This document shows positions 18,123-61,074 of a stretch of 64,000 nt of DNA, one piece after another (position 1 is the stretch's first letter; each line of letters begins with the position of its first letter). The stretch is from Bugula neritina (lineage: Eukaryota; Animalia; Bryozoa). The notes beneath the pieces are model-generated. The model was not told the DNA's origin. It made no database searches and saw only the letters and a list, made by a program, of their open reading frames with translations. Location of the stretch: NCBI GenBank assembly GCA_964035545.1, contig OZ037772.1, positions 5,150,233-5,214,232 of the forward strand, read 5' to 3'. Position numbers and translations under genes: made by a program.

Positions 18123-19265
18123 GTGAAGAGTTAATGCTCAACTCTAAGCCTAGTTCACTACAGTCAAGATTATTCGTAACCAAGTCAAGATTTTCTTATT
18201 GAGTCAAGTCAAGATAATTCCCAAAGTCAAGTCAAAGATAATTAAGAAGAATAATAAAGATCTGCTGGACCAGTAGAGATTTTTGGAGTTGGAATTGTCC
18301 ATACATACAGATAAGCTGATGTGGGCATAAAGTAGATGAATTCCAGTGATACATCCAAAAGAGAAGTCTCACAGGCCAGCTAAGTCAAAGTGTTATTCAA
18401 ATATGTTCAGTTATGATGATGCATACAAATGCAGCTATAAGGGAATGGAACATTCAAGAAGTTCATTTGATGATGTGTGTATGAATTGATTAGAGTTAAT
18501 AGTTTCTACATCAAGCTGGAACATTGGATTTAGCTTTTTGTCACAAATTTGTCACCATATGTGTTTTGTCATAATATTTTTCTATATGCAAGAAATTAAG
18601 TTTTGCTATTGTTATTTGTTATAGTGCAGGCTAAGTTGTAAAAAGCTTTGTCTGCAAATCTCATTGACTTGGGTGCTTTAAAATCCAAGTCAAATCATTG
18701 CTAGTATAGGTATCTGTGCCAGCATTTTGTCAAAGCCCTCCAGAAAGCTTTCCAGTCTCAAACATAAAACAGCATTTCCTTGTTACTCTGTCATTGTCAT
18801 AATATGTTGTCTAATTGCTGTCATCTATCTAGTGGTATTATTATACAAATTGGTGATTTAGCACATTTTGGTTATTTTTAACATTTGTGGTGCATGAACA
18901 CAAAGCACTGTAGATTGTCATTTGGAGACAACACTTGTATATGTCATTGATATTTGTATGTGAGACATAGGTTATGTTGTAAACAATTGTGTAGGTTGTT
19001 TGATTATAAATGCACTCAGTACTAGTTTGTTCACTTTCAGATCTAAAGCTAAACTTTATATATTGATAAATTGTTTTTTTTTGTGTTGTATCTGACAATA
19101 TTTATTGTGATAATTCTCTATGTGTTAGCATCATTTTGATAAATTTGTCAATCTCTATGGATTACGTATAACTTTTAGTAATAATTGTTAATTGATTACA
19201 CTTAATTATATAAGATGAGTGATTTATACATGGAAGTGTTAAACTGCATGTCGGTGAAACAACTC

Positions 19266-19311
19266 CGTGGTGAGTCGGAAACGCTGGACCTTTTCCAGCG
19301 GCTAATAGTGC
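19266..19311 (+). ncRNA. 3' part of an HDV-like self-cleaving ribozyme (R2 5' UTR), 5'-truncated
   Basis: Reads CGTGGT (L3/P3) - GAGTC (P1 3') - GG (P1.1) - hairpin CGCTGGA-ccttt-TCCAGCG (P4) - GCTAA (J4/2) - TAGTGC (P2 3'), upstream of the R2 ORF. Confidence 0.6.
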
Positions 19312-23655: not shown

Positions 23656-23879
23656 AGATAAAACGGAACCAAACTAAGACAGTCGTCGTAAGGGGCGAAC
23701 TTTCACTTAGGATTAGCTCTATGTATAATTGTATTTAAATGCTATTCCTTAGTTTTTTTTGTTAAGTATGTTGTTATATGTATTTATATGTTTGTTTTGT
23801 GTCATTTTTGGTTAACGATTCACTAAAAATCTAAGCTGTTATCAAATGTTTGAGAAATCGGAGCGATTTCTGGGGGGTG

Positions 23880-35709: not shown

Positions 35710-36170
35710 TGTCAGCGATCGGGAGGAGGGAATGGCTATATTTGAGACATTTGATATCTCCATTGATGACTTCCAATATGGAGACCTCATCACCAAGTTT
35801 AAAGCACACTTCGAAAATTGAGAAAATAAAACCATTTTGAGGCACCGATTTTTGAATTCAAGACAACAGCAGGGAGAGGAACTCTCAGTGTTTACACAGC
35901 CTGTCATTAAACACTCCCATTCCTGTAAGTTGGCTGACCACCGGGAAGACATGGCAGCACATGTCGTGATCAATGAGATAAAAGGAGAAAAATTGAAAAC
36001 AAAGTTGCTTCAGATTCTGGACAAAAATTACAGCTATATGTGCAAAATTTGAGTTGGCCAAGAAGACTTTGGAGGAACTAGGAAAAAAAGGGAGAAGGTT
36101 AAAAAGTGAAGTGTCACGAGCCAAGGAGGTGAGAAGAAGATATTCGAAATGCAACAATACGAAACCTAAC
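35710..36170 (+). pseudogene. Gypsy (K02A2.6-like) gag fragment
   Basis: YGDLITKFKAHFE*..LRHRFLNSRQQQGEELSVF..CKL..EKLKTKLLQ pattern, with stops. Confidence 0.65.
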
Positions 36171-38971: not shown

Positions 38972-39314
38972 GCCTAGGGCCACACGGTGCATATTTTCGC
39001 ATGCGAAAATTGAAATCACAAGTAGCAAAGGTGTCCACTGTGCGCGTTGAGAAAACCTTCGCACTTGTCGCTCTGCATTTTCAACGCAAGTGCGAATCGT
39101 CTCTGTCGTCGTCACCTAATTGGCTGGTAGTTATTCAGCGAGCCCAATTTCTTTATTTAATGCTATATTCCAGTAAATTGCGTTTTATTGAAAGCGAGTG
39201 CGATTTAAAAATGAAAGCTTTATTTATCACGCATCACTGACGCTACAGTGGACACCTTTGCTACACGTGATTTTAATTTTCTCATGCGAAAATACGCACA
39301 GTGTGGCCCTAGGC
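38972..39314. mobile_element. PIF/Harbinger-type MITE with ~70-bp TIRs
   Basis: GCCTAGGGCCACAC..GTGTGGCCCTAGGC; 3-bp TSD TTA. Confidence 0.9.
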
Positions 39315-40317
39315 TTAAGGAGGGATCAATGCAGTAATGGAGAAGGTGACATCTTGAACTCTCAATTTATGACCTAAATATTCCTTAGGAAACTCAACTA
39401 AATCATGCTACTGGTATGTGTTTGTTGTTGATCCTAAGTACATATGAGGAATTTGTCTTTGTTTACTAAAATATTCCAAATAAGCCAATTACAAGATTGA
39501 CCTTGTTTTATTATATCTGGTCAGTCTATTATATTGCCTATTGTGTTGTAATATTATATATTTTTTCGATTAGTATAGCATACTATAATATTTTATTCTA
39601 CTGTATTGAGTTACCTATATATCACTACATTAAATGCACGTGTTAGTACACTTGTGCTTACTATGAAATTTACACACTGCCAAACATTTGATACCGATGC
39701 CAAGTTTGCTTCTATACTTCAGCCAAGTTCATTAGCTGCAGGACATAATATTGACAGTTTTGATCGACCTATTTTCGTTCTGCATTTTGACACGCATCAC
39801 TGCCTATTGTATTGAATTGCGCAAGAGTAGAGGCATGTAGATTGTATAATCTAGCCTATATATACTCAGTTAGTTTATCGCAAGCCAAGGCAGTTTCATT
39901 TTGGCTATTGTGCTTGCTTAGTGATAAACTGCGTCAGTCTAAGAGCCTATGTTATTTTACTTGTCAACTAAACTAAAGGACTTTGAATCATTCGCGGAGG
40001 GTGGGTATGAATAGCTCAGTGAATAAGCAGACGTGATTCTGAATAAGCTGGGATATTTCCAGAAAAGAATGTATCTCTGATCAGGAGTTTAAGCCTTCCA
40101 GGAGCCCATTTTCAGTCAAACTTGAAGTTTCTTTAGGTAAGTAGAATATTATGCTATTTGTGGCTTAGTATGAGCTCTGTAAACCCGATTGTCTAAACTC
40201 TTAGTATATCAATGTCTTCAGCTAGCTCTGAGCTCTAAGCCAAGGAGTAAGAGCCATGCTTCTCTGTGAAACTAATTATCTCTCTATCTGTGAGAGGGTG
40301 TCTGAAACACCCTCTCT

Positions 40318-40414
40318 GTACTGTTGAATTTACCCAGTAGCCCCTGTGGTGTAATAGTAGGTATTGCGCCTGTTTGCAAGCCAGGGGTTTCGGGTTAGAA
40401 TCCCAGCGGAGGGC
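40318..40414 (+). mobile_element. SINE family 1
   Basis: Leader tgttgaatttacccagt plus tRNA-like body. Confidence 0.75.
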
Positions 40415-40548
40415 AAAATTATTTTATAAGCTATTTTGGCCTTTAGTGAAGTGTAGTAGTACTCCGAGGGAGTTGAGAGGCCAGGGGGAGCCTGAGGACT
40501 GAAGGCTAGTAGTAGATAGGCCAGTGGAGTTCAGAGAACTGGGTGGAA

Positions 40549-40646
40549 TGTAGTGTTGAGTTCACCCAGTGACCGCTCCCCCCCCCCCCCAGTGGTGTAC
40601 TCCTACTTGCAAGCCGTAGGTCTCAGGTTCGAATCCCAGTGAGCGC
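40549..40646 (+). mobile_element. SINE family 1, with a poly-C expansion
   Basis: Leader gtagtgttgagttcacccagt; B box GGTTCGAATCC. Confidence 0.65.
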
Positions 40647-41394
40647 TAAATTACTTCATACTCTCCGATAATTTAGACTTCTATCTGAAGAGATGGGTCT
40701 AAGTGGAAGTGTGACCCTCGTTTAACAAAAAATTCTTTCAAACAAATGACTATTGTAAATCTATGCGTCAGGTCTTGTTATAGCTGGTATAGCTCTGCAG
40801 CATTTCATTTTATATCCACCACTTTCTGTCCTATCTTTTATCCACCACTTTCTAAACCTGTTGTGAGGTCGAAGGTGTATCGTCCAAGTCAAATGTTTGA
40901 CCCCTAAGGTTTCAAGGTCACTGCTAGACAGCAAGTTATCAGTTCATCAGTTGATTATAATATATCTCATAGCATATATAATATACTACCAGTATTATCT
41001 ATTATATATCTCATAGCATATATGATATACTATCAGTATGCTACTATTATATTCTGCTATGTCTACTAGAGTTAGCAGGCTACTATACAAGTAATATAAT
41101 ATATATGCTATCAAATCTACTATAATATAGCATACATAGTATCATTACATATTGTAATATACTATATATACTACTATATATACTACCTATACTATCAATT
41201 TTATACTACATCTACTAGCTATAGTATACTATCAGTATCATAATAATATGTATTATACTATAACATCTGCCAGTAGATATAGGAATTAAAGCATACAATA
41301 TCATTCAACCAGGAACTATATTATATCAACATTGAAATCATATTATGTGTTGCCAAAAACTCTATCTTTTGGCACAAGTATCACCTTACTAAAA

Positions 41395-41735
41395 CTATAC
41401 TACTGTGCTATGCTACTGTAACTGCTATAACTATACTATGCTATGCTACTACCACTACTATAATAACTATACTATACTACTGTGCTATACTACTGTAACT
41501 GCTATAACTATACTATGCTATGCTACTACCACTACTATAACTATACTATATTACTATGTGTGCTACTGTAACTGCTATAACTATAATACGCTATGCTATT
41601 GTAACTATACTACAACTAAACTATAATATGCTGCTGTAATTACTATAAGTATATTTTTACTATGCTACTGTAACTGCTATATAACTGTCCTAGATGCTAC
41701 TACAATTACTATAATATAACTATACTGTGTTATAA
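41395..41735. repeat. Low-complexity (actat / gctac) satellite
   Basis: Direct inspection. Confidence 0.8.
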
Positions 41736-41856
41736 CTCTGTGAGTTTAGAGTTTGGCCAACAATGTCTATATACGATTTCTGCCCTCAGTTACCCCGTTG
41801 CTCTGTGCTGCATCTAACAATATTTTTAGCTAGTTACTGCATCCTCGGACTTAGAG

Positions 41857-42197
41857 CAGGGCTGTTCAACAGGCTGCCCTAGGGCTGGATGTGGCCCCCA
41901 GCCTACATTTATGTGGCCCTCGAAGGCATAAAGCTAAAATAATTTTTCAAGGTGTACATGAATTAAAGTGAAAAGCCACCTTTTAAATGCCTAATTTATA
42001 CAAATAAAACAAAAAATGCAGCCGGCAGTTACTATTGGGACTTAATTGTGTAATGATTCATAAAGTTTTGGAATAAAGTAGTTTGAAAAAATTGCTGATT
42101 CTGTGGCCCCCAGCACAAGCTGAAGCTTACAATGTGGCCCTTACCATGACATATTCCATTCCTGTGGCCCTCGGTCTGAAAAAGTTGGACACCCCTG
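41857..42197 (+). mobile_element. Complete hAT (Charlie-like) MITE
   Basis: TIRs CAGGGCTGTTCAAC / CAGGGGTGTCCAAC, perfect 8-bp TSD ACTTAGAG, subterminal TGGCCC motifs. Confidence 0.92.
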
Positions 42198-42330
42198 ACT
42201 TAGAGCCTCAATGTAGAGCTTGAATTCTACTGGAAAAAAAGCACTTCTTTACTATAAACCAAATGAACCATAAAGAAGTTTTGGCTATGATTATCTTATG
42301 CAACAGCTTGAATCTTCTATTGTTTTTCAG

Positions 42331-42390
42331 GTCTCTTTGCTGAGCAAACAACCGTACGACCGTACCACCATACCTAGAGATCAGTGTTTG
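42331..42390 (+). other. Candidate 5'-UTR exon of the ankyrin gene
   Basis: tgtttttcAG acceptor and tg|GTAAGT donor bracket 60 nt. The ATG exon has its own acceptor (46395-46396), so upstream exon(s) are expected. Another strong donor lies at 40137. Confidence 0.3.
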
Positions 42391-45300
42391 GTAAGTGAGA
42401 GCTCTATTCCTATACTATTAGTTTTCCATTTTACTCTGACATGCAGAGTTGTCTTCTTTCTTTATCTGTGAAACAAACAGATATTAAACTTAGAAGTGTA
42501 TTGGTTTGTTAACTCTTGTTCTATCACATGTCAGTGGCAGGTGCTATAAATGGGAATTCTGACACCTGCTAGCACTTGTTACACCAGTTTATTGAGTCTA
42601 TTGGGTATTGATCATGGAAAATATTTTATATTATAATTATATAGAAAGGTGGAAGCAATGTTGATAAGCAGAAATTTCAAAACCTATCTGGTAAAAAAAG
42701 AATTTATAAGTGTTCCCTCCGTATCTCACTGAGCTACGGTCCTAAAACCTCAATTCCTGACATAGTAGAACACTATATTTAACTCATGGTTCAGTTAGAT
42801 TCGGCCATTTTGTCCCTATCTACACACACATGCCACAAAAACAGGGGGGGGGGGTACAAGCCCTCTCCTGACCTATGGATTTTTATGTGAACTATATCCG
42901 CTCGACGTAGAAGGAGCACTGTACTGTGCTATGCTCCCTTATTTTTTGCTTAAGCAAATGACAAGTAAAAGCTGTTAGATTCGTTAAACAAGTTACCAAG
43001 TGACTGTAGGCCTACTATTGCTTGGTAACATGGCCAACACAAAGTCTTACGACTTAGAGCTATATGCACACAATTCTTTGATAATGTTTCTTATCAGTTG
43101 CTCCGCTTGGCTAATATTTAATTTATCAGCTGTCTTTCAGTTTGCTTATACGAACACTATCTTGATTCTTAACAAATTCCACAAACTTAAAGAGTCTTAT
43201 AAACTGAAACTGTGAGATATTGCTGTTTTAACAGCATATAATGGCATTGGTGTGCATATATTAGATATTCACCTGGCTGGTTGTTATCAAAGTTTAATTA
43301 ATCAGTTTAAAATTCAATTTCTTTATTTTAACAATATGTTGCTGGCCAGCCTATCACTGCGTTTCCATGACTGCACATAATGCGAATGAATGCTTCGTAC
43401 GGATTATTTGTGGTTTGTGGTTTGCATTAACTTATAGTTGTGGTTTCATCCGATGTAACTGTTTCCATTAGCCGAATGAAAAAATCCATTCGCATAATGC
43501 GATAATGGAAACGCAGTGTTTGTCTTTGATTTAGGTTCTACTATAGTCACTTTGAACTGCCAGTAGCTTTCTTCAACTTGATGTTTATATTTGATACAGT
43601 GAACTGCTCTGTTATGTAACCTACATGACAACCAACAGGACATTTTGTTTATTAGCTGTAATTTTAGGAAATAATCTATAAGTTGGGGGGGTAACTGAGT
43701 GCCCTAACTTCGAGTTCAAGAACTCCAACTACTGCCCACATTCACCCTCAATTCACAGCTGCTTATAGACCAATTCTAACTTTAGTAGCCAAACCCAGTA
43801 ATGTAGGATTTTTAACTCTACTTCAAATAGTATAGATCCTAAAATTTAAAGTATAAAGAGTATATATAGAGTATATATAAGTATATAAAAAGTATATATA
43901 AAGAGTATATAAGCTTAAATCGGCATCATTGTCAGCAACCCAACGTAATCTTTGACCCTTTATTCATGTGTCATGACATCTCTAGCGTTTTATAAATTTA
44001 TTACCTCATAAATGTTTTTGCCATCTACATACATAACATGTGCCTTATAGTCTTGGTGATATGAACTATAACATGGGAGTTATCACCCCTGGCACCAGTT
44101 ATACACATAGTTATAGTATAAATAACAGATGTACAACGATTGATTATTGGACATGAAGGAATTTCTAATAACTTGCTTCAAAGGCAAAAAGCATTTACTG
44201 CTTGTAGCCCAAGTATATTTACAGGAAACTATGTTGTTTGTAAGCAGGCTTTTGAGCAGAATTAAAAGCTAAAGGAACATAGCTGATATCTTTCCTCTAT
44301 ATAGGCAGTAATCTTTGGCTGGTAAATCATAAACTGGCTTAAGGGAGATAACTCTGTGCTTTCAAATTAATTACGCACCCGGTATACAATGCAGCACTTG
44401 AAAATTTTTGTTTTTTTATCATCAATCCTATAAAGCAATTTGACATAATTTATAATATATCACGAACTACACACTGTCTAACATTCAGCAGAAACTAACC
44501 ACTACAAATGATTTCCTCCTGCTTTGCAGCAATTCACAAGCAACACTAGTGTTTGCATGTGTATAACCTGGCAGGTATCTTATCTGTAGCCAGATGCCTC
44601 ATTTCTCAGTAGTCCTTTCAAGTAAAGGGTTAAAGGGCACATATTATAAAGCATTTGGGAGCAGTAGTTCAGAGGTTAAGATAGCCTAACTTTTTTATTA
44701 CGTCTTGGCTTGGGGCATGGGTTGGAATTCTTGGGAGAACATAACTTCTTTTACTAGATTTCTAATCTAGAACACAAGCTAGCTTTTCTAAATTTCTCCA
44801 TTACCAGACCAACTTCGGAATATATATTACACTGCTTTCAAGTTGCCATGCAACACATTGTGTAGTTGGTAGTATATATAAGAAGTAATAAGAGATTGGC
44901 ATTGTTTGAAGATCAAAAGGAAAAATGTCCTATTCTCTGATAAAACCAGTACTTTTGTAAGTTGACTTTAATGTAAGTGGAAATTATAAATACAATTTGC
45001 TCAGGACAATAGTCGACAAATTATTGACAAGAATATATGAAGAGAATTTATATCTGCTATTACTAATAAGGCTTTCATAATATATTAAGAGAATAATATA
45101 TTGTTGTGAATTTACCTATCCACTAATTACTGGGTATTTAGAGCTAATGTAATACTGCCAAGTTTCGAGTAAGAAAGAGTTTATTTAAGCCAAAAGATAA
45201 GCAAATAACTAACTACTCCACAAGTAAGAAAAACACTACATAATTATGGATAGCAGAGCACAACCTATCTAATTCAATGCCACTATCCAACTGCGCTTAT

Positions 45301-46414
45301 TCAAATGCAGTTATCCAACTGCACTTATTCAACTGCGCTTATTCAAGTGCGCTGTCAATCAACGCTAATTAGCCAGCCTCAGTTATATCGTAAGCTGCTA
45401 TTCATTGTCTGAGAGTTAGTAGACGAAGTACTAGGCTAGATGTACGACCCCTCTAGTATACTTGGAATACTAGAGAGAGATAGGCTTGGAATTGTCTGTT
45501 CGATATACCAGAGGATAACTCCATGTCCTCTTACAATATGTATGTTATTCCCTTGTCATTATTGTCTTACTCAGTAAGATCATGAGTATTTATCTTTGGT
45601 TTCCAAAAGTAATGGAATGTTTATTGTTCTATTATAAGACGATTACCTTATAAATATCACATTATTTAGTAACACCTTAGCTTTAGAAGAAATTTACCTA
45701 TAGTTACCCTGTTTAAAGTGACTACTCCATTCCATATTGAAAGTATTATCAACATTTTCAAAGCCACTCAAGGTGGGTGGATAGAGGGGGCGTATCCATG
45801 ATAAGCCTTAATTTATCAAAGATATGACGAGGTAGCTTATATATTCAGGTGTACTAAATTATGTAACTAAAATAACCCAATCTCTAACTACATTTCCATG
45901 CCTCATGCCATGTGCGAATAGATTTTTTATTTGATGTTTGGAAGCAGTTGCATCGAAGGAAAAGGTTTTTCCCACCATTCAGATTCATAGAATACCATGG
46001 AAACGTAGTGTACAATTAAACTCTATAGCTACTGTCATTGATTGCATTAGCAAAATGTATATATATATCTGAGTAGCGGTGAGACATATAGGAAAGATTT
46101 ACTCGCACTTTTGTCCAACTGAATGCTAGGATAATGTATGTGTCAGAAATAAAAAGAGTTAAATCGCTCACATTTGTGAAATTAAAGTATTCAATCAACG
46201 TCTGTTAGTTTTTTAGACTTACTTTAAACCCTTTTGTCTTATATATTTCTTATATTAGAGTTTTGTCTTGTCATAGGTGCTAGCGTTTTTTGTGTTAGTG
46301 TATGCTGATTGCACTTGTAAATCAGGGTAAAGAAAGCTTTAGTTTTTGTGACAGTAGAGTATAAATCATTCAACAATGTTAACTTGTTTCTTTTAGATCT
46401 CAGCAGGAAGTCTG

Positions 46415-46708
46415 ATGGCCATCACCAGTGACAAAGACACATTAAAAGAGTGTCTTCTGAAAAAAGACACAAACGGATTCGAAAAGGCGTTGGAGGATAT
46501 TCCGGATGGGGAGCTAAGAGAGTTTCTGTTACAAGACGCCTGGACAGATCTCTTTAACCAGACTCACATTGGTCTCTTCAGCCTAGTTATTTTATGCAAA
46601 GGTTGGCAATCTTTCTGTTATATTTAACAGCAGGTTTATGTTATAGAATCTCTAACACACTTCACTTATGCAGTACTAAAATATTCAACTATATTCAATA
46701 TATGTTAC

Positions 46709-46799
<91 letters not shown>

Positions 46800-49700
46800 T
46801 AGTTTCTGTATTCTGGTGTGTGTGTGTGTGCGTGCGTGCGTGCACGCGAGCGTGCGTGTGTGTGTTAACTGTTATTTGTGTTTATATCTTATTTTGATGA
46901 TCTTTTATTTGCTCTTATCAATATTTCTGAGCCTTTACAAAATTGCTTTTATCAACAATGCTCTTTCTGTTAGATGCGGAATGGGAGAAAATATTCGAAC
47001 AAGTAATAGTTAAACTCTCAGCAGCTGACTGCGTTTCGATTTTGGAAACAGTTGACTCCAACGGAAACAACATCTTACATTATCTCAACAAACATCAACT
47101 GACCTCTACTGCAAATTTGCTATTAGACAACCTTTCAAAGGAAGTGAAATTTCATTTGATGACAAAACAAAATAAAGATGGAAATACGCCTTTACACTCA
47201 GCTGTAGAAGGAAACAATGTCATTTGGGTTAGAACATATGTCGAGGTGTTAAAAAGCTCCGAACCAGAAGATTTAGAAGTAATTTCTGAGATGGTCAATA
47301 ACAATGGATACAGCCCTCTGCATCTGGCAGTGAGCCAAAGCACACCAGATGTGGTGAAACAATTACTCAGCGATATGACACCATGTCAACGAAAAAAGAC
47401 CATTAAAAAATGTCGTGTTAAAGAATACCAGGAGCTGTGTGCTGACTTAGGTCAGTTTGAGTACATAAATAGAAGGTATAAAGAAAATTCTTTACACTTG
47501 GCAATCAAAAGCAAGCAAGAGAAAATTATCCAAGTCTTGCTGCAAGGTCTCCTATCGAAAGATCTACTCAGCATCATCATGGAGAGAAACTCAGATGGCG
47601 AAACAGCCGTTCATTTAGCAGTAAAGGACGGTTCTTATGAGATGTTGATGTTGATGCTAAAGCCTTTAGAATTAGGTGATCTTTTGGAAGCCCTTGATGA
47701 AAAGGAACGGCTCACCAATGAAAATGTCTTACAATTAATTATTAGAAGAGAAAGAATGGAGATGTTAACACTTTTGATTGAAGTTTTATCTAAAAGTACA
47801 GCTGCACTAACTAACTTTGAAATGCAAAGCTGGCCCAAAAATATTTGTATTGCAGCGTTACGCACAGCAATTGCATTCTCAAATCAAGAGGCATTTGAAA
47901 GTTTATTGAAAGTTGTGAAAAGTATAACAAACTGTTTGACCATTGAAAGGATTGGGGATGAACAAGAAAATCTGCTTCAGTATGTTGTGAGATATGGTAA
48001 TGAAGAGTTACTTGAATCGCTGAAAGGAGTTTTAGATGTAAAAGGGTGGAGTGATGCCTTGTTGTACTGTGACAGGGCAAAAAACAATGCCCTTCAACTT
48101 TCCATTGTCCATGCTAAATTAAAAGCATTACGTTATATGCAAGACACCACTAGTTCAGATCATGAAACTTGGGAAAAGGCTCTCTTTCAACAGAACTCTC
48201 GCCAAAATAACATTTTACATGAAGCCGCAAAGTTTGGCAACTTTGAAATTTTTGAAAAATTTCTGAAGTCATTAGGTGAAGAAAAGCAATTGGAAATTAT
48301 TTCCCAACTAAATCGGACCCAAGAAACAGTACTGCATATAGCTGTGCAACATAGAAACCCAGCAATAGTTGAAAAACTGTTGGACATTTTGAGCAAGGAC
48401 CCTGAGCAGCTCAAAAAAATATATACTTCATCAAACCCAAATACTATCCTACATCTAGCAGTAAGTATTAAGCATGAAAAGATTTCATGTTTTCTACTAG
48501 AAAATCTTTCATCAATTTTGGAAGCAAATTCTGAAGAGATTTTAGAAATTTTAGGCACCGTTAATAAAAGTGGAAACACTGTTCTTCAAGCGGCTGTAGA
48601 AACTGGTTCCACAAAAATCATTGAAAAAATTCTAAAAATACTAAGCCCTAAAACTTGCGAGCAATTACTAACACACTCAAATAAAAACGGGAAAAATGCT
48701 CTCCATTTAGCAGTAATGACAAAAAAGCCAAGTATTTTGAATTTGCTTTTAAACAGTTGTTCATTGATTGAGCGAAAGAAGTTACTAAACCAAGAAGATC
48801 ATGAGAGCTTTACTCCTAGGTCATTAGCCATAAAGTTCCAAATGATAGAGGTTGTTAGCGCTATACTTTACGCGTTGCACAATGAGGAGGTTTCACCTGA
48901 GCACAATGCCCTTCAGGAGGCAATTGGCAGTGCTGACAAAAAAGCATTTATTGAAATTCTGAAGGAGACGTCTCCCCACTTAAGCTCAGATCTCAATGCG
49001 GAAGATCCCTTGATGCACTTGGCCATACAATCAGGCAACCTCCAAATGCTAAAGGTTTTATTGAAGTTTCCAATTCAGAAATATTCTGGACACTCTCAGT
49101 CAAGTATACCATTTGCAGAGCAGGAAAACTCAGATGGTGAAAATGCTATATTTGTGGCAACTCGCCTAAAAAGTGATGAAGCATTGCGATTGCTGCTTGT
49201 CAACCGAATGCCATCTCTTGTTTTCTCTAGGAATAAAAAAGAAGACACTGCATGTCATATTGCAGCTGAGAAAGATGATGTTGAAAGACTGAACATTATA
49301 TTATCATCCCTTGATGCTAACTTAAAGCTCAGAGCGTTAAAGCTATGTAACACTGATAAAAAAAATGTTCTGTGCTCTGCTGTCGGTAGTGGTGGACTAG
49401 AGTGTCTTAAGTACATCATCCGAACAGTTCCTTCAGCACAGGGTTTGGAAGACTTAATTGTAGACCCTAGAGGCACTAGTGCCCTCAAGCTAGCTGAAAA
49501 ATTACATCACAATGAAGCTTTGAGAGAACTTAGTGGCCATGTTAGAGCTCAAAAAGTGCAATACAGTGATCTGGTACCTAAAATTCAACCTGGCAATGAA
49601 CAAGAGGTGGCAGATTTTCTCAAAACTCTGAACGTATCTGAAATGACAAATGTACTTGGGGAAGAAGACGAAAATAAAAGCAATGTTCTGCATGTTGCTG

Positions 49701-52700
49701 CTCAAGTTGGCAATGCAAAAATGATGAGTTTGCTAATTGAAAAGCTTCCAGCAAAACAACAAGTAGAGTTTCTTCAAAAGGCTAATGCCAAAGGTTTCAC
49801 TCCTTTCCAACTAGCCGTGGAACAACAAAATGAATCAGTTGTAAAAGCAATGTTGGAGTTGGCTGCAAAGCACAGTAGCAATGTATTGCTGAAATCCTTC
49901 TTTAATTGTTTACCATCAAATAATCAAAAGAAAATTCTCATGGCCACACCTGAAAGCAAAAGTTTTTTGTTTTACCTTTTAGCTTTGAAAAAAGTCAATG
50001 CGATTGGAATGCTGATAAAAATGTTGCCAGAAAAGGAACGAGTGGATGTCATTTTTCAAACAGATCTAAAGAGATATTCTCTGTTACATCATGCTGTGAA
50101 GCAAGAGAATGCCGATGCTTTAGATAAGTTAATCGAGCTAGTGAAACCAGATGATTGGGAACAGTTTATTACTGAGCAGTCGAACTACCGTGAAAATTTG
50201 ATTGTCATGGCTGTGAAGTTGCCTCAAACCGGCATGATAAGCAAAATTCTGAAACCTCTGCCACAGAATCAGAGAGTTAAAGCTATTTTATCCACATCAA
50301 GTAGGGAGGTAGATGTCATGAAATGCATTATTGAAAACACGAAAATGCTGGAATCATTGCTAATGGAAGCTGCAGAAAGCAAAAAAGGGCAAATCACCGA
50401 CTTATTTGTTCCGTGTGAGTACAAGCATCAAGCAATTGAGCAAGCTTTTTATATGTCGGTGAAGTACCAATGTGCGGAGATGGTGAAAGCTCTGCTAGAT
50501 CTTATGGATCTTGATCAAAGAAGAGAAGTAATTGCTGATCGACAAAATAAAAAAGGAAACAGCATTTTTCACATTTTATCTAGTTCTAAAAATTTGGAAA
50601 TGATCAGGATGTTGCTTGAGTCGCTCTCACAATTACCACAAAGACAAAAACTTGGAGTCATTTGTTCAGCCAACAAATATGGATACAACTCAGTTTCTTT
50701 AGCGGTGGATAAAGACATAGGAGCTTTGCTTGAGTTGCTCAAGAAGAGCGCGCCATTACCATCAGACTTACGGGAGAAAATTGAAAATGAAATTGAACGA
50801 CCCGTTGTAAAAGAAGAAAGCAATTCCACTTCTGAGGAACTGCTAAGCTTTCTGGATGATAGGCAAAAGACAAGTTTATTGATCCAGCAACTCCGTTTTC
50901 GTGCCGTCGAAACTAAGAAAGACAGCTTTCTAAAAGTAACAGGATGGTGTTCCTCTTTTGCTGAAGATTGTTCAGCTTTGCAATCCTTTTCTATTCCCCA
51001 TCGAAACCTGATGCATATTGCACTCAAAATAAATTCAATGAAGAGCGATGAAGCAGATAATCAGGTAAAACGTTTTGAATTAGTGTTGGAGCAGTTGAAC
51101 ACTAGCGAGATCGAACATATGCTTACACAAAAAGATGGCGATGGATTTTACGCTCTGGAACTATCTGTTATACATCTTAACCATCGCGTGCTGTCTCAGA
51201 TTTTTGCAAAAGTAAGCCCAAGATGCATTGTACAGGTTCTTACACAGCGTAATATTCGCCAAGTCAGCATTCTTGAGATTGCAGAAGAATTGCACCGGGA
51301 TGTGAAAACTGTGTTCCAAGATATTCCTACTGAGAAACAGTGGGACGTCAAAGTCCTCCTTTTACAGAAAGCTATAGAGTTAGAAAACAGCTCCCTCCTG
51401 GAATTGATGTGCACCAACTTTGAGGAAACAGTAGTTGGTGAGCTTCCTATGCTAAAAGAGAACTTTAGTATGTCTCAATCACAGATAAGTCTGTTGAACA
51501 CCGTGAGCGATACATACGTAATACCCGCTCCTCAGCTTAAAGCTAAATGCTACGCTGTTTTAATTTATGAATCCAGTTTTGAAAATGAAAAAACCTGCAT
51601 TTACCAGCTATTAAAAGACATGGGATTTGAGACAGCATGTTGCAAATGGGACAAAAAAGATGATAGAACCGGGATATTTGATAACATGGCTATCGATGTA
51701 TGGAAACCATGCTCATTGCTACTGATGTTTGTGTTGGGAGACAGAATAGCTGGAAGTGATAAAGTTGCGCTACAAACTCTGGAGGCTTTACACTCGTGTC
51801 CTGAAACCCCAATAGTAAGTATTGAAAATGTAACTAAGTTTGTAACCATAAAAATGCTTTTACCCCAATGCTAATATCATTTAAGTTGGACTTCCAAAAT
51901 AGTTATTCCAGCTAAGAAAAAACATTTTGCCACTTGATTCAGGATTAAATTTTCCTAAAAAGTATTCTATTATCTGCATAACTAAATTTAGCTAGCTTAT
52001 TAAGAATATCAAACTTTTTATTATGAGACTTTCCAAATTATATTCAATAAATTTAGTTATACAATTGCAGCAACAAACACACTAAAATTAAACAAGTAAC
52101 TCGGATTAAAAAAACTGATTCTAATATTAAAGCTTAATAAATTTCAGTAGTTAGCAATACTCTAGTTTCAGCAACAAAACTATGCGAAGCAAAACGTTTC
52201 AGTTTCTCAAAATTTTAAGTGCACTAATAACTTTTGTAAAACACTTTTTAATGTATAATATAATGAAATATATAGCATAAGCAAGTAGTAAAATGTTTGG
52301 TATATGTTGTAATAAAAACACTGTTGATTTGTGATCTTTTGTAGGTGTTTTTCTATGAGGCATCGAATTTGGAGACTGAAAGAAAAATAATTTCTAAGAG
52401 AAAGCATTCAGCTCTGATTGGTGCTAAAGCTAGTCAACAGACTGATGGAACCTTTCTAAGACAAGTAGTTCAAGAACTCAAAGCTTCTCAGGACAAAGAT
52501 ATTGTGAAATTGGGTTTGCAAGTTGCTCAGCGGTTGGGTGAACCTGTGGAATACTGGTCCTGGCTGCTAAAGACGCCAAGTCTGCCTTCTTCATTTGGCG
52601 TCGAAGGTAATTTTAAATACACCTTGCTCATGCATTGTGATGGAGTGTTTTGCTGATGGTGTATGGTGTAAGCTTTAAAAACTTGAAATTGTATGATAAA

Positions 52701-55049
52701 TGAATTAGCATATTATATTGCGCCTATAATATATAATTAGCAGATGTAATTTAAAGTTATTGCTATTCAAAATTAATTCTGTTTTCAATTTCAGAGGCAG
52801 AGGGCGAGTTTTCGAGTGACAGTTGTTCCGAGATGACAGATGACAGTTCTGAGTTTGATTGGCAACCTATACCATCTGAAGTCTACCAAAATATTTCCGA
52901 GTATGTTCAGTCTTTTTAAAGAAAGTAGATTATGTCTAATACATATATAATTGCCTTAAAATTTGTTTTTATAGAGAAGTATATTGTTGTCGCTGTATAA
53001 ATAATGTTTAAATTATTATCTATTTTCTTTCTCAGTTGAACAGTACTCTATTTTTCGTTTACTCCTGTAGAATCTGCTCAAGACACAATGTGAAAAACTT
53101 TGCGCTCACACAAGACCCTGGTAACTGGCAAAATATAGTAATCGGTGTTGAAAACAAAACAGAAGACTTAGAAAAGGACTTTAATAAGTTGAACAATGAC
53201 TTTGCATCAGAAAACATTGGCTTTACTATTACAGTTGAAACCAGTGGTTCCCACCTTTACACTAAGTTCCACGCACCTGCAAACTTAAAACGTGAAAAAT
53301 GGGAAAACCCAAATTGGGTTAATGCTAGTAGTGATTCGGCATGTGAATTGTTTGTTCAAGCTGTTGAAAGGAGGAGAGTGGCACCAGAAAATTCAGTTTA
53401 TTCAGTTGGCCCTGCCCACGTGGTAATTGATGAGGAGATGCATGAAGAATTTTCCAATGCTGGCCAAATTGAAAATGCTAGACGAGGTGTAGAACAATTT
53501 ACCACCAACCACCGCTGTGTCTTACATCAGCAAGATGATGGTGACAGACTAGACATTGGATATCCGCCATTGATGTGCTATCGGCTTTATTGCTGGGTCA
53601 AGGAAAATATTGACATCAACGATAACGATTCGTGTCCAGATTGTCGGGAATTCGGAAGGAGGATCAACCAGCTACGTATAGAAACACAATACATAGAAAC
53701 GTCAAAAATGCACCAGGAAATTAATGGAAAAGGAAATTTTGATGAAATCAGGCTATGCACTCACCTCATAATGAACGACATGATGTTCCTACCGTTAGCC
53801 AGAGATAATGCTCATGAGTTAAGTAGAGAATTACACTATAATAACATTTATAAAGTTAGCACAATAGGTGAACTTCGTAGCTTACGAGGGAAGACAATAA
53901 AAGTTAATAACTACAAAGGCCGCATAAGTGAGATATTTGTGAAGTATCGCCGCAGTGCTGAAGGTCACAACAACATTTTCGGATTCCATGTTCAATTCAC
54001 AATTACAACTGATGAGTAAGCATATTTACTTGTTCATTTTTAATCAATTTTGAATTAATTGCATTTAGCAAAATATGTCTTAAATTTATATATTAAGCCA
54101 AAAACTTTTCAGTAACAGCAGAATTGCACTTACAGTTGTTGAATATTGTATATAACAATTGAAAACTTAAATTTTTTAATAGGTCAAACCTAACTAATAA
54201 CAATTAGGTAACATTATTCTATCAATGTACTTATTTCTTTCTTGTCACTTTTCCTGTAAAAGCTTGAGAACTGAAAGACGTAATTGGAAAACTGAAAGAC
54301 GTAATTTGAGAACTTTGGTAAAACTCTCTAAAGAGACAAACATTGACATAGGGTCTCGGAACTGGACTAATCAAATGGCTCATTTTCTACAACATATTTG
54401 AACATATAGTAGGGGGCTATAGATATGAGGTTTATTTGAAAGCAATGTAGCTGTTAGCTGTGTGAAGAAAATTATGTTTTCACTAAACTCAAAAACCTTA
54501 GAATTCTATTCAATGTTAGAAATTAAAAATACATAAAATGATAAATAGCCTAAACATTTCAAGCAGTTAAATCAAAAACAAAAAATGTTATCTGAGTATT
54601 TAATTTAAAATATAGAAGTATAGTTTTTGTCTTTTCTAAGTGATTTTTCAGAATTTGGTGCACGGTTTCAATCAATAAAATTGTAATACAACATGAATTT
54701 CCTTAAATAAAGCCAGTGCAGTTTTTGAGTCAGAGTCTGTATGAATTTTCAAACACCCGAGTGTTACAGTACATGATATAATTATAAGTAATGAAACTGT
54801 TATTTCAGCTCATTGGAAAGAGGGGACTGTGGTCGTATTCTCTACCTCAAAGCTAAAAATCCTGAAACAGAAAAGGCAGAATGGCAACCATTGGGCATGT
54901 ATGTGGGAATGAATGAACTGACGCAAAACTTGAAAAGCAAAATTTACCGTGCTGTTTTGCTACACCAAACGTTCAGAGAAATGGAGGAAGATTATCCACA
55001 TCATATTAATGAAGTCCGTCTTTTTGGTGGTAGAAGACATAGACAGTGA
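46415..55049 (+). CDS. Multi-exon gene (~2193 aa): ankyrin-repeat array + pseudo-caspase domain + acidic linker + chymotrypsin-fold (Cys-nucleophile) protease domain. Exons 46415-46601, 46974-51814, 52345-52606, 52795-52900, 53071-54015, 54809-55049
   Basis: All 5 introns are GT..AG with matching phases (1,0,1,2,2). The joined CDS is 6582 nt, open from ATG to TGA. Many ankyrin motifs (GNTPLHSAV, GYSPLHLAV, GETAVHLAV, ETVLHIAV, GKNALHLAV, GFTPFQLAV). Caspase-like motif order at 51542-52590. Protease motifs PAH / NDMMFL / GDCG / LGMYVG in exons 5-6. Confidence 0.85.
46714..46865. repeat. (TA)n then (TG)n/(CGTG)n microsatellites in the first coding intron
   Basis: Direct inspection. Confidence 0.95.
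46974..51814 (+). CDS. Giant 4841-bp exon encoding the ankyrin array and first half of the caspase-like domain
   Basis: 1643-aa ORF without stops; acceptor ctgttAG at 46972-46973, donor GTaagt at 51815. Confidence 0.92.
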
Positions 55050-56249
55050 AAATCACATATCTAAATTTACTCATTTGGTTGGTTTAGTTGAAAATATGAA
55101 TCATGAGAACTACATTTTAGTGTCTCCTTTTTGCTATTTTTGCTATTAAATTTAGATTAACTTCATGTAACATCTATGATTATTTTAATGAACTCTGCGA
55201 CTTATTTTTACAGTAAGATAAATTATGCAAATAGCATCAGTTCCTTCTTACATGACATGACATTGTGAAACCAGTTTTTCAGCTTAAACTTAAAGTGCTA
55301 ACTCCGAGTTGATCAAAAACCTACAATATTTTACTTTGAAGTACATTTCATTTTAAATCATCATATTATTGTGATAGATTTCCTCATGAGGTATACATAT
55401 GTGTGAGTGTGTATGCATTCTCTTATGTTTGTGTGTTAAATATGTTACAACACCAAGTTTCAATGTAGTTGACAGAAAACATTGTAGTTTTTTTATTATA
55501 TGGATGTTATCTATACTATACTAATCTTTAAGTACTAGAAGTACCATTTTAATCTTTAGAATTGAATTAATATATTATATGTTTGTAATTTCACAGTTTT
55601 CATAAAAAGTTTGATTCAACATTTGATTTCAATTGTTAACAGAATGCTGTGCTGGTAATATTCACTATTGTACTAGATTTGTATAATAATATATGCTTTT
55701 ATTGCATCATTTGATTTTTTCTCACCAATTGTTTGAAATTCTTTACACTACAAAATGCTTAGATTATTAAATAAAATGTTGTGTAATGCGCTACAAGTGT
55801 GGTTTTATTTTGGTTTCTCAAACGGTAATCAATCACTGTCTGGTTTAAGTCGCTTTTGTATGTATGGATCTTCTCATCAGCTTTAGTGAAAAATGTATTA
55901 GCAAGCTCCAAAACCCCATTTCTTGCATACTCTAGTATCTTCTCTCTACCATCATTCTTCCTGCCCACTGACTTTCCTCCATATCATCTTTCAAAGCCCT
56001 CTAGTCTATTTGTTCCAACATGTCCATTCAAATCACCCGCCAGTATCAGTTTTTCGGAAGCCGGGATGCGTGTAGTGATTCCTTCCAGTTGGTTCCAGAA
56101 TCGCTGCTTCTCCTCTTCACAACCTTGTTGGGTTGCATACACGGTCACTATGTCGTATGTCTTTTCAGGTGTTACTAATTTTGCTGCCATTATTCTACCA
56201 GACACTCTGTCAGTCACCATTACTTTATCTTTCCACTCCTTAGGCATAT

Positions 56250-56598
56250 TGTAATGGGATTACGTAGTATAACAATGGGGTTGTCCCCTCTTGTATGGGA
56301 ATACTTATAAAGTATGTTCTACTATCCAATCAGAGGGACCGGAAGGCAAGGTTCCGGTCAAGTGACTGTTCGCGGGTTAGCCAGCAGAAACCATGTGTTG
56401 TTGAGAGCAAGGACTCGTAGTAGTAACATGTGTTTGTAATTGATCAGTGTTGTATAATCGTTTGATGTGGTGTTATAATTATGTTTATCGAATTAAATAA
56501 AGGTTATCGTACGCAAGCCAGACTATTGATTGCTAGTTAAATTGACACTAAAATACGCATACAATCCACGCTTGATAATTGCGCTAAAACTCACAACA
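56250..56598 (+). repeat. Gypsy 5' LTR
   Basis: About 8 substitutions and 2 single-base indels versus 61075-61421 (manual count). Confidence 0.95.
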
Positions 56599-56599
56599 G

Positions 56600-56617
56600 T
56601 GGTGGCAGCGGTGGGAT
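56600..56617 (+). promoter_or_regulatory. Primer-binding site, complementary to a tRNA-Leu 3' end
   Basis: Reverse complement is ATCCCACCGCTGCCACCA. Confidence 0.8.
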
Positions 56618-56633
56618 CTTTGCGTATATCAAG

Positions 56634-57555
56634 ATGACAGAAAGAGGCACAAAGCTACCCATTCGGAGGAATGAAGGTGAGGAAGATAACGTTGCTATAC
56701 CTATAGAACCAGAAGTGAGAGTGCATAAGGAATGTTATGAAAAGAAGTACCGGCTGAGGGTGCCCACCTTCTCAGGTGAGGAGTCGGTGGAGCAATTCGT
56801 TCAGGAATTCCAAGATGTAATGGCCGCCCAGAATAGCATTGCTCAAGCTCAGGATGGCACTGTCAGACAAAGCCAAGCCATACGGAGTGGGACCAGACAT
56901 CGACGGGATCTTTGCTTCCCTGCGGGCCCGTTTTGGTATCTCCGCTGTAGATGCACGGGCCCGTCTCCAAAGACTGCGGCGTAATCCTCACACGCCGCTA
57001 CAAGAGCACGCTACCACGGTCATGAGACTGGTGCAGATCGCGTTCCGCGATCTGCCTCAAGTAAACCGTGAGAGGTACACTTATGATGCCTTCGTGCAAT
57101 CCATCAACAACTTGGGACTCCATCACCAACTCCTGGCGAGGGGAGTCACCACGGTCGAAGGTGCACTCGCAGAAGGAGAGGCTTACCTTCTGGCGAGTCA
57201 GCTGCACCGGAACCGTGTGACTTCTCGTCAGGTAGACATGGAGCCCTCCGCTGCTCCTACCGCTCCCAACGCGAAAACTCCAGCGGTGGCCAAGGTGACG
57301 CAGATGACGGTAGCATCGAAGGTCGCACAAATGACCGACATGCTAGCCGAACTGGTCTCCGCCTTGGCTCCTCTCAGCCAGTTAGACACTACCCATGAGC
57401 TAGACGGGCCACAGGTACAGTCACCTGGTAGAGGACACCCCTCTTGCTGGGAGTGCGAAAGACCAGGACACTTCCAGAAACATTGTCCCCGAATTCAACC
57501 AGGGTTAAACTACGACGGCCCGCAAATGCTCCCACATCCGGCGGGCCGCCGATAA
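56634..57555 (+). pseudogene. Gypsy gag (frameshift near 56835)
   Basis: VPTFSGEESVEQFVQEF, capsid-like helices, CCHC knuckle. Confidence 0.85.
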
Positions 57556-57839
57556 ATTCCCAAGGGAGGACACAGTGGCATCCGCCACGCCGGACGTCTG
57601 TCCGACACCTCGCGGAACGGCCACCAGGACGGCAAGCAGGCTGTACAAGCCGCTCTCCGCCGGTGTTCTCAATGCCACTCTGCAACAGGTTCAACAAACG
57701 ACGGACTGCAGAGTCTGCGAGGGGAAAGGCCCAAACACCGCCACATCCTCGACAGCTGGTCCCCAGTCGTCGTCAGAAACCTAACCCCTCCACCAGGGCG
57801 AGGGAGATGAGGTCACCCAAGATACCACTACATCCCCAC

Positions 57840-59658
57840 GAGAGCAGCCTGTTTCTACGAGGACAGATAGCCGGCAAGCCTGCCAAATTCCTGTTAGACA
57901 CGGGCTGCACCACCAACCACCATTCTTCGACACATTCAGCGCTCAGATCTGAAGCAGGTTGGGACCGTACAAAGGCGATCATGGCACTCTGGCAGACGGG
58001 TTGTGCATCCCCTTCTACGGTATTATTGAACTCCCTGGGAGCGTCTGTGACCAGACCATCCAGGAGAGGTTCATCGTCGGACAGCTCCAAGAGGACGCCA
58101 TCCTTGGGATGCCATTCTTACAACGACACGGATGTCGCATCGATTTTGGTAAATCTGCGATGTTTATGGGCGGCAGGGAGCTCGCCTGTGTCGATAAGTT
58201 TGGCCATCCTCTAACGGGAGAAGAGCCGGTAGTACGTACCTGTACTATGCCCGGCCACTCCAGGGGCGCCGTCCACCGCCAGGTAGACGGTGACCTTACC
58301 TCCAGGACGGAAGTTGTAGAGAGCGCGCACCCAAGCGTCCCACCTGCCCGCAGCTCTAACCAGCTGACACGGAGAGGAAAGATCTCAGTGCCATGCCTCC
58401 ACTCCCCCTCGGAGACGGTGAACCTACCACCCACCTCTCCACCGAGCTGTACTCCTTCTGTTCAAGAAGGTAACAGCAGGCCATCGGGGGAAACCGCGCT
58501 GAGAAGTCTTCTAGAGAGCCTGTCTCTAGGGCAGAGGACTGCCTCACCCCACGCCCCGCACAGCCCGGAGACTCGTGGGGGAGAATCAGACGGTTGTGTA
58601 GATAACAAGAAGCGCCAAGAGACGGCCACGTTACTACACAAAACCGAGGCTGCACCTCACCTTGGGGACCCTGACATGCCCCCAGAGATGGCACAGGACC
58701 TCCACGCCGAACCCGTCTCAATCAATAGCGTCAAGGAGCTACGACACCTACAAGAACATCTTCCGGGAGTGGTAGCCGACGTCTATCAAATAAAACGGGA
58801 AGGGCGACGACCCAGTGACAAACAGCGGAAGCTGGGCTGCGCCAAGTGGCAGCTGTACTGCCGACATTGGAACGCACTGCAAATCAGGGCCGGATGGTCT
58901 ATTGACCATATCTTTGGCCGCTAACCACTACCAGCCAGACCAAGAGAGGACCCTCTGTCCTGCCGCCATCCGCCGGGCATTGATAGAAGAGGTACACCAA
59001 CAGGCTCACGGGGGAGCCCAACAGGTGCTCACCAAACTACAACTCTGGTGGTATTGGCCTAACATGGAGCGTGAAGTACGGCGCAGAATTAGGCAGTGCC
59101 GAGTCTGCCGGGCCAGTAAACACGGCCGCCCTCCTAAGAAGGGGGGGGCGGCGAAGGCAAAATGCAGAGAGGCCCGGGCAGACGGAGACTGCTGACCTGG
59201 TCGACAAAACGCCCAGGATGCAACCCAAAGTTGTGGCGAGGCAGGAAAAGCCACACCCGTTCAGGGAAGTGCGCTCATCGCCTTCAGCGTCCAAGCTGCC
59301 GCCACCATTTCCTAGGTCAGAAACCGACCTGGAAGTGCAAAACCCCCCCACGGGAGAGGCTCTGTACGGAGATGCTGGGGAAGCTCCATTTGTCACAAAC
59401 TGGCTGGAAGCACCACCCAGGAGACGTGACCGTCCACGGGTGAGTAAACCGCCTTGGTTGGGGACGACACCCCGAAAACGGTGTTCTAGGCAAACCCCCG
59501 CGTACCTCAAGGACTTACCACGTGCCGTTCAGGGCGCGGTCAAACGTCCTAACAGGTACCTACGGGGAAGAAGGCAAAACATGGGAGTTATGAACACCAC
59601 GGGAATATCAACTTTTGCCTCGGCGGAATCTCAAAAGAGCTTAATACGCCGGAAGTAA
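57840..59658 (+). pseudogene. Gypsy pol remnant: protease, integrase Zn-binding domain and C-terminal tail
   Basis: FLLDTGC..DAILGMPFL and HHCC motifs; several frameshifts; no YxDD motif. Confidence 0.8.
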
Positions 59659-59893
59659 TAAGTCCTAGCCACGTTTCACAACCACGCTGCTCGCTCTTCT
59701 ATCGCATTGATACAGCTCTGAGTAGACGTACGTAGAAATCATAAACATACCACTCTCGTTCACAATGGCTTGCCAAGAATCGAGAGGTGAGTTAGTTATG
59801 TTTTTGGTACGAGGACTAAACTGTATTAATCAGCTTTACTGTAACAGAATAAGCTGGAGACTCGGTAATAATTTTTAGTGGTGGAAACTCACA

Positions 59894-60793
59894 TTGACTC
59901 TAAGACTGAACAGTCTGTCACAGCAGTGTGTGTTTTCGATCAACTATTCGTTAACTGAGTCTCACGAGTATCTAATTGAGTTAAGTACCCACCAGGCTGT
60001 ATACGCCGGTCGTACTCAGTGTACCCTCTTTACGCTGTTATACTCTTACAGATCACACTCAATCGACCAACTTCGGGTCACAAGATCTACCCCCCTCTCC
60101 TCCTTGGATAACGGACCGAAAACAGACAACGAACTGCCCGTGGCACTGCGCCGAAGACATAAATGGGTGTCACGACGGACGGAGCGACAAATTGAAGAAG
60201 CCTGGGGACCAATTGGCTCACAACGAACCTGCCACGTGTGTTATGAGGAGCTTCCCTCACACCAAGGACTGCGGCTGCATGTGAATGTACACTTCTTACT
60301 ACGCTTCTGTCCGTGCGGATTTCACGACGTATACCCATACCTTATCGTGGCACATATGATGGACTGTTTCGCAGGCAAAGGCTATGTAGTGGACGCGGAC
60401 AATTACGATCAATACCTAGAAGCGGTCAAACCAGTGGTTAAGAAGGCTTTAACCTGGGCCGCATTATCCTCCGGGTTTTATACAATGCTAACAGCCGCCC
60501 GTCAGAAATCCCCTATGGTAAAAACGGTCGCTGCAATCATACCCCGGCCAGACAACACCCCCATGGAAGCATCAGATTCTCCAGGAGAAGCGACGCCAAC
60601 TCCAACCAGGCCTAACCGACTAGCAACCGTCGAGGTAGGACTCCTACGACTGCAGGATGAATTTACCCAATTGGCCCCCGACTTACTCAGCACTACAATG
60701 AGCCTTAGTGAACTGAAGGGCTCAGTGGGATGCCTTAAGCGTAGACTACGTGCACGGCAAGCACGACACTGGACTCAGTCCCTGCAAAACTAG
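59894..60793 (+). CDS. Extra Gypsy ORF: Zn-finger-like region + coiled coil (start uncertain)
   Basis: 299-codon open frame between pol and the 3' LTR; CHVC..LRLHVNVH..CPCG..H..C; C-terminal heptads. Confidence 0.65.
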   Translation: MTLRLNSLSQQCVFSINYSLTESHEYLIELSTHQAVYAGRTQCTLFTLLYSYRSHSIDQLRVTRSTPLSSLDNGPKTDNELPVALRRRHKWVSRRTERQIEEAWGPIGSQRTCHVCYEELPSHQGLRLHVNVHFLLRFCPCGFHDVYPYLIVAHMMDCFAGKGYVVDADNYDQYLEAVKPVVKKALTWAALSSGFYTMLTAARQKSPMVKTVAAIIPRPDNTPMEASDSPGEATPTPTRPNRLATVEVGLLRLQDEFTQLAPDLLSTTMSLSELKGSVGCLKRRLRARQARHWTQSLQN

Positions 60794-61074
60794 GAGCTGG
60801 AAGTTGACAATTCTACCCCGCATATCCTCAGGGTACTACATTGTGATCGTGTAAATGCTTGATCTGCCAACAACCGATCTGTGTGACGATCCAGGTCTCT
60901 CTCTCTGTAGCTGGCCAGCTGTGTGTCGGCCGTCTGGTTATCTTACTTATATATATGTCGTACGTTTGATATTTCTCTTCTTTTTCTTTGTGGATTTTCC
61001 TTACCTATGTCATTTTTGCATTATTATACTATTTTGCTTTATCAGAAAGTAGGGCTTTCTGCTGGTGGGGGTGG

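Follow-up and report, generated by a model that had tools for sequence, protein, structure and literature searches.

What kind of domain can stand between a very long ankyrin array and a protease on a single protein chain? The question is raised by a gene of the bryozoan Bugula neritina that lies on contig OZ037772.1 (assembly GCA_964035545.1), within a stretch of 64,000 nucleotides (positions 5,150,233 to 5,214,232 of the forward strand), referred to here as the window. In our model, built from canonical GT..AG sites with matching phases, the gene spans positions 46415 to 55049 of the window on the + strand and codes for a protein of ca. 2,200 amino acids, in which an ankyrin array is followed by a caspase-like domain of ca. 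185 amino acids, an acidic linker, and a C-terminal chymotrypsin-fold cysteine protease. We conclude with moderate confidence, from sequence comparisons, that the compact domain descends from this bryozoan's own caspases (Peptidase C14) and has lost both catalytic residues. Three lines of evidence lead to this reading, namely, a lineage-specific heptapeptide at the homologous place, two independent and collinear profile matches, and the absence of a TIR signal. The domain is encoded by the 3' end of one exon and by most of the next, with the following features.

51542 to 51814, + strand: domain part 1, strand 1 through helix 3 (AVLIYESSF, LLKDMGFET, LLLMFVLGD, RIAGSD, CPETPI)
51548 to 51580, + strand: CYAVLIYESSF in translation
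51608 to 51628, + strand: LLKDMGF, with no mismatch to the helix-1/strand-2 motif found in one own-genome caspase subfamily
51608 to 51631, + strand: LLKDMGFE in translation
51710 to 51742, + strand: CSLLLMFVLGD in translation
51728 to 51742, + strand: FVLGD, at the place of caspase xLSHG (LLLMFVL on VTVLMSH in the MAFFT alignment)
51797 to 51814 and 52345 to 52365, + strand: CPETPI and VFFYEAS, one motif split by the intron
51815 to 52344, + strand: intron 2, phase 0, from the donor GTAAGT at 51815 to the acceptor TTTTGTAG ending at 52344, cutting the domain immediately before strand 4
52345 to 52590, + strand: domain part 2, with VFFYEAS (strand 4), a short charged linker, SALIG (strand 5), helices 4 and 5, and WSWLLKT (strand 6)
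52357 to 52365, + strand: E-A-S, at the place of caspase Q-A-C
52447 to 52479, + strand: GTFLRQVVQEL in translation
52498 to 52524, + strand: DIVKLGLQV in translation
52558 to 52584, + strand: SWLLKTPSL in translation

The original prediction for this locus had described a pseudo-caspase domain split across intron 2 and had supported it with eight short strings. All eight of them (the seven strings located above and ALIG) occur in the translation, in one reading frame across a phase-0 intron, and the GT..AG intron at 51815 to 52344 is indeed the second of the gene in our model. Intron 2 has a GC content of 0.25 and 15 to 19 stops in each frame, versus a GC content of 0.39 to 0.42 and a coding frame without stops in the exons that flank it.

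A heptapeptide shared with caspases of the same genome

The sequence LLKDMGF is carried by exon A of the caspase loci L031, L037, L038, L043, and L047. Searched as a degenerate DNA pattern, in which the second residue may also be Phe, it was found at 16 sites in 216 Mb, versus a single site for the reversed control. One of the 16 is the present site, and the remaining 15 encode LLKDMGF in 11 cases and LFKDMGF in 4. A listed match to exon B of Peptidase_C14 directly follows at least 10 of these 15, and the others fall within the same caspase cluster on C1. Besides, this was the only 7-mer common to the domain and to the 2,083 open reading frames (ORFs) of the loci analyzed (118,557 residues), while shuffled sequences shared an average of 0.02.

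Profiles built from the genome's own caspases

The genome of Bugula neritina comprises 216.00 Mb in nine chromosomal pseudomolecules (PMC11480708). We searched 216,009,554 bases, with matches on nine large pieces (C1 to C9), and found at least 177 Peptidase_C14 exon matches, a lower bound given that 150 of 300 candidates were scored, and about 30 to 40 exon matches to TIR or TIR_2. Four kinds of profile were then built from the loci of this genome: caspase exon A (positions 1 to 49 of the Pfam model), caspase exon B (positions 46 to 130, with SHG and the Cys motif), p10 (the small-subunit part), and TIR.

The exon-A hidden Markov model (HMM) matched the exon-1 piece of the domain with 5.2 bits, a score that was reached by 3 of 2,000 shuffles and by none of 701 real-protein decoys (empirical p of ca. 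0.0015). The p10 HMMs matched the exon-2 piece with 4.2 to 4.8 bits, reached by 4 of 2,000 shuffles and by 3 to 7 of the 701 decoys (empirical p, 0.002 to 0.01). With hhalign, the same two pairs gave P values of 0.0011 (exon A and the exon-1 piece) and 0.011 (p10 and the exon-2 piece). Among the HMMs, the crossed combinations of profile and piece gave no signal. Neither was there any signal from the own-genome TIR profile, either by HMM (p of 0.25 and 0.91 for the two pieces) or by hhalign (P of 0.29 and 0.54). When the pieces were compared by phmmer and Smith-Waterman with individual caspases and TIRs, everything was noise except for the LLKDMGF subfamily and three p10 exons. The likeness to caspases claimed by the original prediction is weak yet better than chance, and it is significant only against own-genome caspase profiles, with a null result from Pfam. 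The domain can be considered a hard case for homology detection, missed by all public profiles and detected by those of a family expanded in its own genome.

An intron position shared with caspases or TIRs was looked for and rejected: the caspases are split after model positions ca. 49 and ca. 130, the TIRs at ca. 76, and the domain before strand 4. The caspase expansion of this genome is very large, with clusters at C1:32.8-35.5 Mb, on C6, at C7:7.58-7.71 Mb, and at C8:4.82-5.04 Mb, and one caspase cluster is found only 110 to 330 kb upstream of the window.

Anatomy of the domain under the caspase alignment

Each exon piece was added to the own-genome family alignments with MAFFT (addfragments). 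In part 1, AVLIYESSF is placed on ALIINNxxF (strand 1), IYQLLKDMGFET on the helix-1/strand-2 junction, and RIAGSD on vlYGtD. In part 2, VFFYEASNLE is placed on VVIVVACRSG, and GTFLRQVVQEL and DIVKLGLQV are placed on GTWFIRxLV and RDVxELFRIV (helices 4 and 5); we placed WSWLLKT by eye at the SxLTK of strand 6.

Under this alignment, the position of the catalytic Cys is occupied by Ser, with the neighboring Gln replaced by Glu, and that of the catalytic His reads Leu or Gly depending on the register, with no His at all between 51710 and 51790. A deletion of 14 residues after strand 1 takes out the loop with the P1-binding Arg, the GYxSWR loop is replaced by a short KASQQTD, and there is no long loop ahead of the last strand, so that neither Arg-bearing loop of the P1-Asp pocket is kept. 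The alignment thus bears out both the absence of the catalytic residues and the shortening of the active-site loops that had been predicted. As far as the sequence can tell, the domain appears to retain the core elements and to have each groove-forming loop cut.

Gene model and genomic context

The remainder of the gene contains the following features.

46415 to 46601, + strand: first coding exon, Met start (ATG at 46415), 62 codons plus 1 base, phase 1, donor GT at 46602
46974 to 51541, + strand: ankyrin-repeat array and degenerate repeat/linker (Pfam Ank families) of the giant exon
52795 to 52900, + strand: acidic Ser/Asp/Glu-rich linker exon, in our own splice-site model
53071 to 55049, + strand: C-terminal chymotrypsin-fold cysteine protease exons, one from 53071 to ca. 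54017 and then one ending at 55049

No coding exon was seen upstream of Met 46415 within positions 36000 to 46400, and phase 1 of the first exon is compatible with the acceptor at 46973. The second exon runs in full from 46974 to 51814, inside an open frame of 1,624 codons (46943 to 51814) that has domain part 1 at its 3' end, and the exon that holds domain part 2 extends from 52345 to 52606. All junctions through to the protease exons are canonical splice sites with compatible phases, and the GC content of the exons is 0.39 to 0.44, versus 0.25 to 0.27 in the introns. The ankyrin array was recognized by Pfam Ank_2 at 2e-65 in 13 stretches, as well as by Ank, Ank_3, Ank_4, and Ank_5. Simple repeats occupy part of intron 1 (window positions 46715 to 46870), first a long (TA)n tract and then (GT)n and GC-rich ones. 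Elsewhere in the window, positions 16000 to 23700 and 56000 to 60800 are GC-rich blocks (0.47 to 0.55) with long ORFs.

Some of the closest relatives of the ankyrin array (25 to 30% identity; E of 1e-9 to 1e-14) are long ORFs located at C2:30.51-30.55 Mb and C9:9.32 Mb, ca. 3 kb upstream of caspase exon matches. A word search with the ankyrin region returned generic ankyrin proteins only, none of them with a caspase. The C-terminal protease exon has three paralogs in the genome, all of them short genes, and no ankyrin ORF or alpha/beta domain is found upstream of them in their ORF lists. One of these paralogs is adjoined by a GC-rich block (L013:190-6272) coding for LTR retrotransposon proteins (gag, protease, reverse transcriptase, and integrase-like).

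Acidic linker exons similar to that of our gene precede the protease of one paralog (L014:7135-7335) and also the caspase domains of multidomain caspases (L031, L036, L043, and L047). These linkers have an aromatic residue after the acidic run, and they precede proteases of two unrelated folds, chymotrypsin-like and caspase. In caspases of the LLKDMGF subfamily (L031, L035, L028, and L037), long nonankyrin ORFs (e.g., ...VKKNGANVYQDGIYTQLVHDY...) are found upstream of exon A and are followed by the acidic linker exon, a layout that may represent another multidomain caspase architecture.

Weighing of the alternatives

Public libraries were searched exon piece by exon piece (part 1 and part 2 separately). 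A word search over the region of the domain in the long exon gave none among 243 candidates, tblastn against plasmids gave no match, and the search of the own genome found no paralog of either piece or of the 318 amino acids that precede the domain. A PADLOC match to E1-E2 (E of 0.014; 11.6 bits) was judged to be noise.

Several results weigh against descent from caspases. Neither piece matches Pfam Peptidase_C14 (PF00656), even at E 10, and the locus is absent among the 150 genome-wide C14 matches listed; NCBIfam and PADLOC scans of both pieces gave nothing relevant, the PDB sequences gave no match to either at E 10, and phmmer with the exon-1 piece found no homolog among 1.84 billion representative proteins, the only two matches being translated tandem repeats. 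AlphaFold single-sequence models of the separate pieces had pLDDT values of 42 and 57, too low for a fold search. The supporting scores are just 4 to 5 bits and come from profiles of one genome's own exons, and the pairwise z-scores against caspases (4.7 to 5.5) are near the noise of non-collinear TIR exons (3.6). In the middle of the domain (helix 2 to helix 3), the exon-B profile found no significant match, either by HMM or by hhalign, and the alignment of this part is without statistical support. Taken as a whole, the caspase alignment requires four or five deletions, versus almost none for a TIR layout drawn by eye. Regarding the heptapeptide, L.xLGF is also found at the helix-strand junction of some TIRs of the same genome (KLKSLGF in L050), and the LLKDMGF match may partly reflect a structural habit common to such junctions. 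Given that the curated Peptidase_C14 profile recognized neither piece, we would class the domain as caspase-derived and not as a caspase.

TIR and caspase domains have a common three-layer alpha/beta layout with the same order of the first five strands, and, by eye, the sequence of the domain suits either of them. It might be a divergent TIR or other flavodoxin-like domain, acting as an oligomerization or NAD-cleaving signaling module between the ankyrin repeats and the protease, in which case its caspase-like motifs would reflect the near-identical strand order (2-1-3-4-5) of both folds. In a language-model (Atlas) feature search with the exon-1 piece, the ten best named matches, another result at odds with caspase descent, were all TIR_2, TIR, or SEFIR clusters (0.88 to 0.90; recognition, 3112), and the spacing by eye of YAVLIYES, KWDKKDDRTG, IFDNMAIDVWKPC, LLLMFVLG, S..V..Q, and PIVFFYE suits TIR strands A to D without deletions; LGF is also present at this junction in some own-genome TIRs. 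However, an Atlas score of 0.9 is reached by 4 to 10% of shuffled proteins, ten concordant matches arise for a third of the shuffles, the features shared were 147, versus usually 170 or more for true family members, and the exon-2 piece had no TIR match in this search. Besides the null results of the own-genome TIR HMM and hhalign, the locus was not among the 44 candidates of Pfam TIR_2 over the whole genome down to E 10, nor was it included among the genome-wide candidates of Pfam TIR, which did not match the exon pieces either. Aligned by eye to own-genome TIRs, the position of the Glu that NAD-cleaving TIRs conserve after strand C (S-x-x-C-x-x-E) reads Gln, with a Glu three residues later. 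Furthermore, a TIR domain has helix E as its last element and would not account for the extra helix and strand seen here, while the caspase-hemoglobinase fold has an additional C-terminal helix and a sixth, antiparallel strand (sheet order 2-1-3-4-5-6). On balance, we find a TIR-like origin quite improbable.

We would give a little more room, while still considering it unlikely, to a lineage-specific alpha/beta domain with no recoverable relationship to known families, for which the caspase matches would be the product of chance and of the sequence habits of helices and strands. Such an orphan would account for the lack of homologs among the 1.84 billion representatives, for the null word search and the absence of own-genome paralogs, and for family-level scores that all stay under the curated thresholds. 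It is harder to reconcile with two independent pieces that match the corresponding parts of caspases, in order, and nothing else, with the 7-mer identical to that of an own-genome caspase subfamily at the homologous position, and with the caspase domains that adjoin the relatives of the ankyrin array. Finally, the segment could be nonfunctional, a decaying exon pair or a misjoined gene model, which seems very improbable for a domain entered by the uninterrupted frame of 1,624 codons and delimited by canonical junctions, compatible phases, the contrast in GC content between exons and introns, and stop-free coding frames. Descent from the caspases of this bryozoan remains the best-supported of these readings.

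A possible pairing platform

With both catalytic residues lost, the caspase-derived domain is probably a scaffold rather than an enzyme. The last strand is the dimer interface in caspases, and the caspase core, including this strand, would be retained here. The loss of the dyad and the groove while the core and the last strand are kept makes it plausible that the domain serves as a nonenzymatic pairing platform. It might pair with a second copy of the same protein, uniting two C-terminal proteases, or with one of the many live caspases, by analogy with the cFLIP pseudo-caspase and caspase-8; the ankyrin array would supply the binding of a target or ligand.

We tentatively suggest, as a possibility that we hold with a good deal of doubt, that Bugula has a family of one-chain sensor-platform-effector proteins, all retaining the ankyrin array and the dead caspase platform while the effector protease is exchangeable, a live caspase having been swapped here for a chymotrypsin-fold cysteine protease. 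If such a swap took place, a platform for pairing derived from caspases would control a protease whose fold is unrelated, on one chain with it and with a very large ankyrin array. This would be a natural case of effector swapping inside a sensor-protease family, and it would mean that the pairing surface of caspases can be put to new use as a general proximity switch. Pseudo-caspases such as cFLIP illustrate that a dead protease domain can turn into the main regulator of a live one, and the cell death and immune machinery of bryozoans is almost unstudied.

Other caspase and TIR loci

Another caspase relative without the catalytic Cys was found at L025:1486-2520 (C4:5000994-5001812, minus strand). 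It is an intronless caspase-3-like gene in which the Cys is replaced by Ser (KPKF.FFDAS.G) and the His is kept (STH). Seven sequences with 48 to 97% identity, including a Watersipora subatra protein, show no variation in the Ser, the His, GKPKF, and SWRRN..GCWFSR, and a word search with L025 recovered nothing outside the small family of bryozoan proteins to which it belongs. These sequences suggest a conserved bryozoan pseudo-caspase or, possibly, a caspase with a serine nucleophile.

On a small contig (C17:1451-11433), the loci L052 and L053 contain long intron-free ORFs, with one frame open for 1,550 amino acids, that combine an N-terminal TIR_2 domain with a P-loop NTPase-like motif (GASGAGKS). 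The contig looks bacterial and may originate from a symbiont or a contaminant.

Comparison with known systems

Among known families, TIR domains (Pfam TIR and TIR_2) resemble the Bugula domain in size and hydrophobic pattern, and they were the top language-model lead. The LLKDMGF-subfamily caspases (C1:33.8-35.1 Mb) have the identical heptapeptide, a similar strand 1 (ALIINNxxF), and helices 4 and 5 (GTWFIR...RDVxxLFxIV) that resemble those of the domain. They differ in keeping SHG, a live Cys (HACSG), and the Arg-bearing loop, which makes them 14 amino acids longer at this point, and also in their introns, one behind exon A and one behind the Cys motif, and in their N-terminal region.

Heterodimers of cFLIP and caspase-8 have been described (PMC7864959, PMC11994107), and a cFLIP-like scaffold or decoy had been proposed in the original prediction, a label that fits by analogy only. 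No sequence similarity to cFLIP was detected. As to death effector domains, of which cFLIP-L (CFLAR) has two at its N terminus, Pfam on the giant exon gave Ank families only, with the 62-residue first exon and the linker that precedes the domain not scanned separately. From the lack of these domains in that scan, the different partner protease, and the absence of detected similarity, the Bugula domain is not, on sequence grounds, a member of the cFLIP family. In the place of the two death effector domains, the Bugula gene has an ankyrin array of ca. 1,600 amino acids, and its domain is ca. 70 to 80 amino acids shorter, with the groove loops deleted, while that of cFLIP-L is a full-size caspase-like domain with its loops. 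What the two would have in common is a caspase-derived domain without the catalytic Cys and His, retained in cFLIP-L as a nonenzymatic partner and regulator of a protease. For cFLIP-L this partner is caspase-8, on another chain, whereas in Bugula a chymotrypsin-fold protease is found on the same chain.

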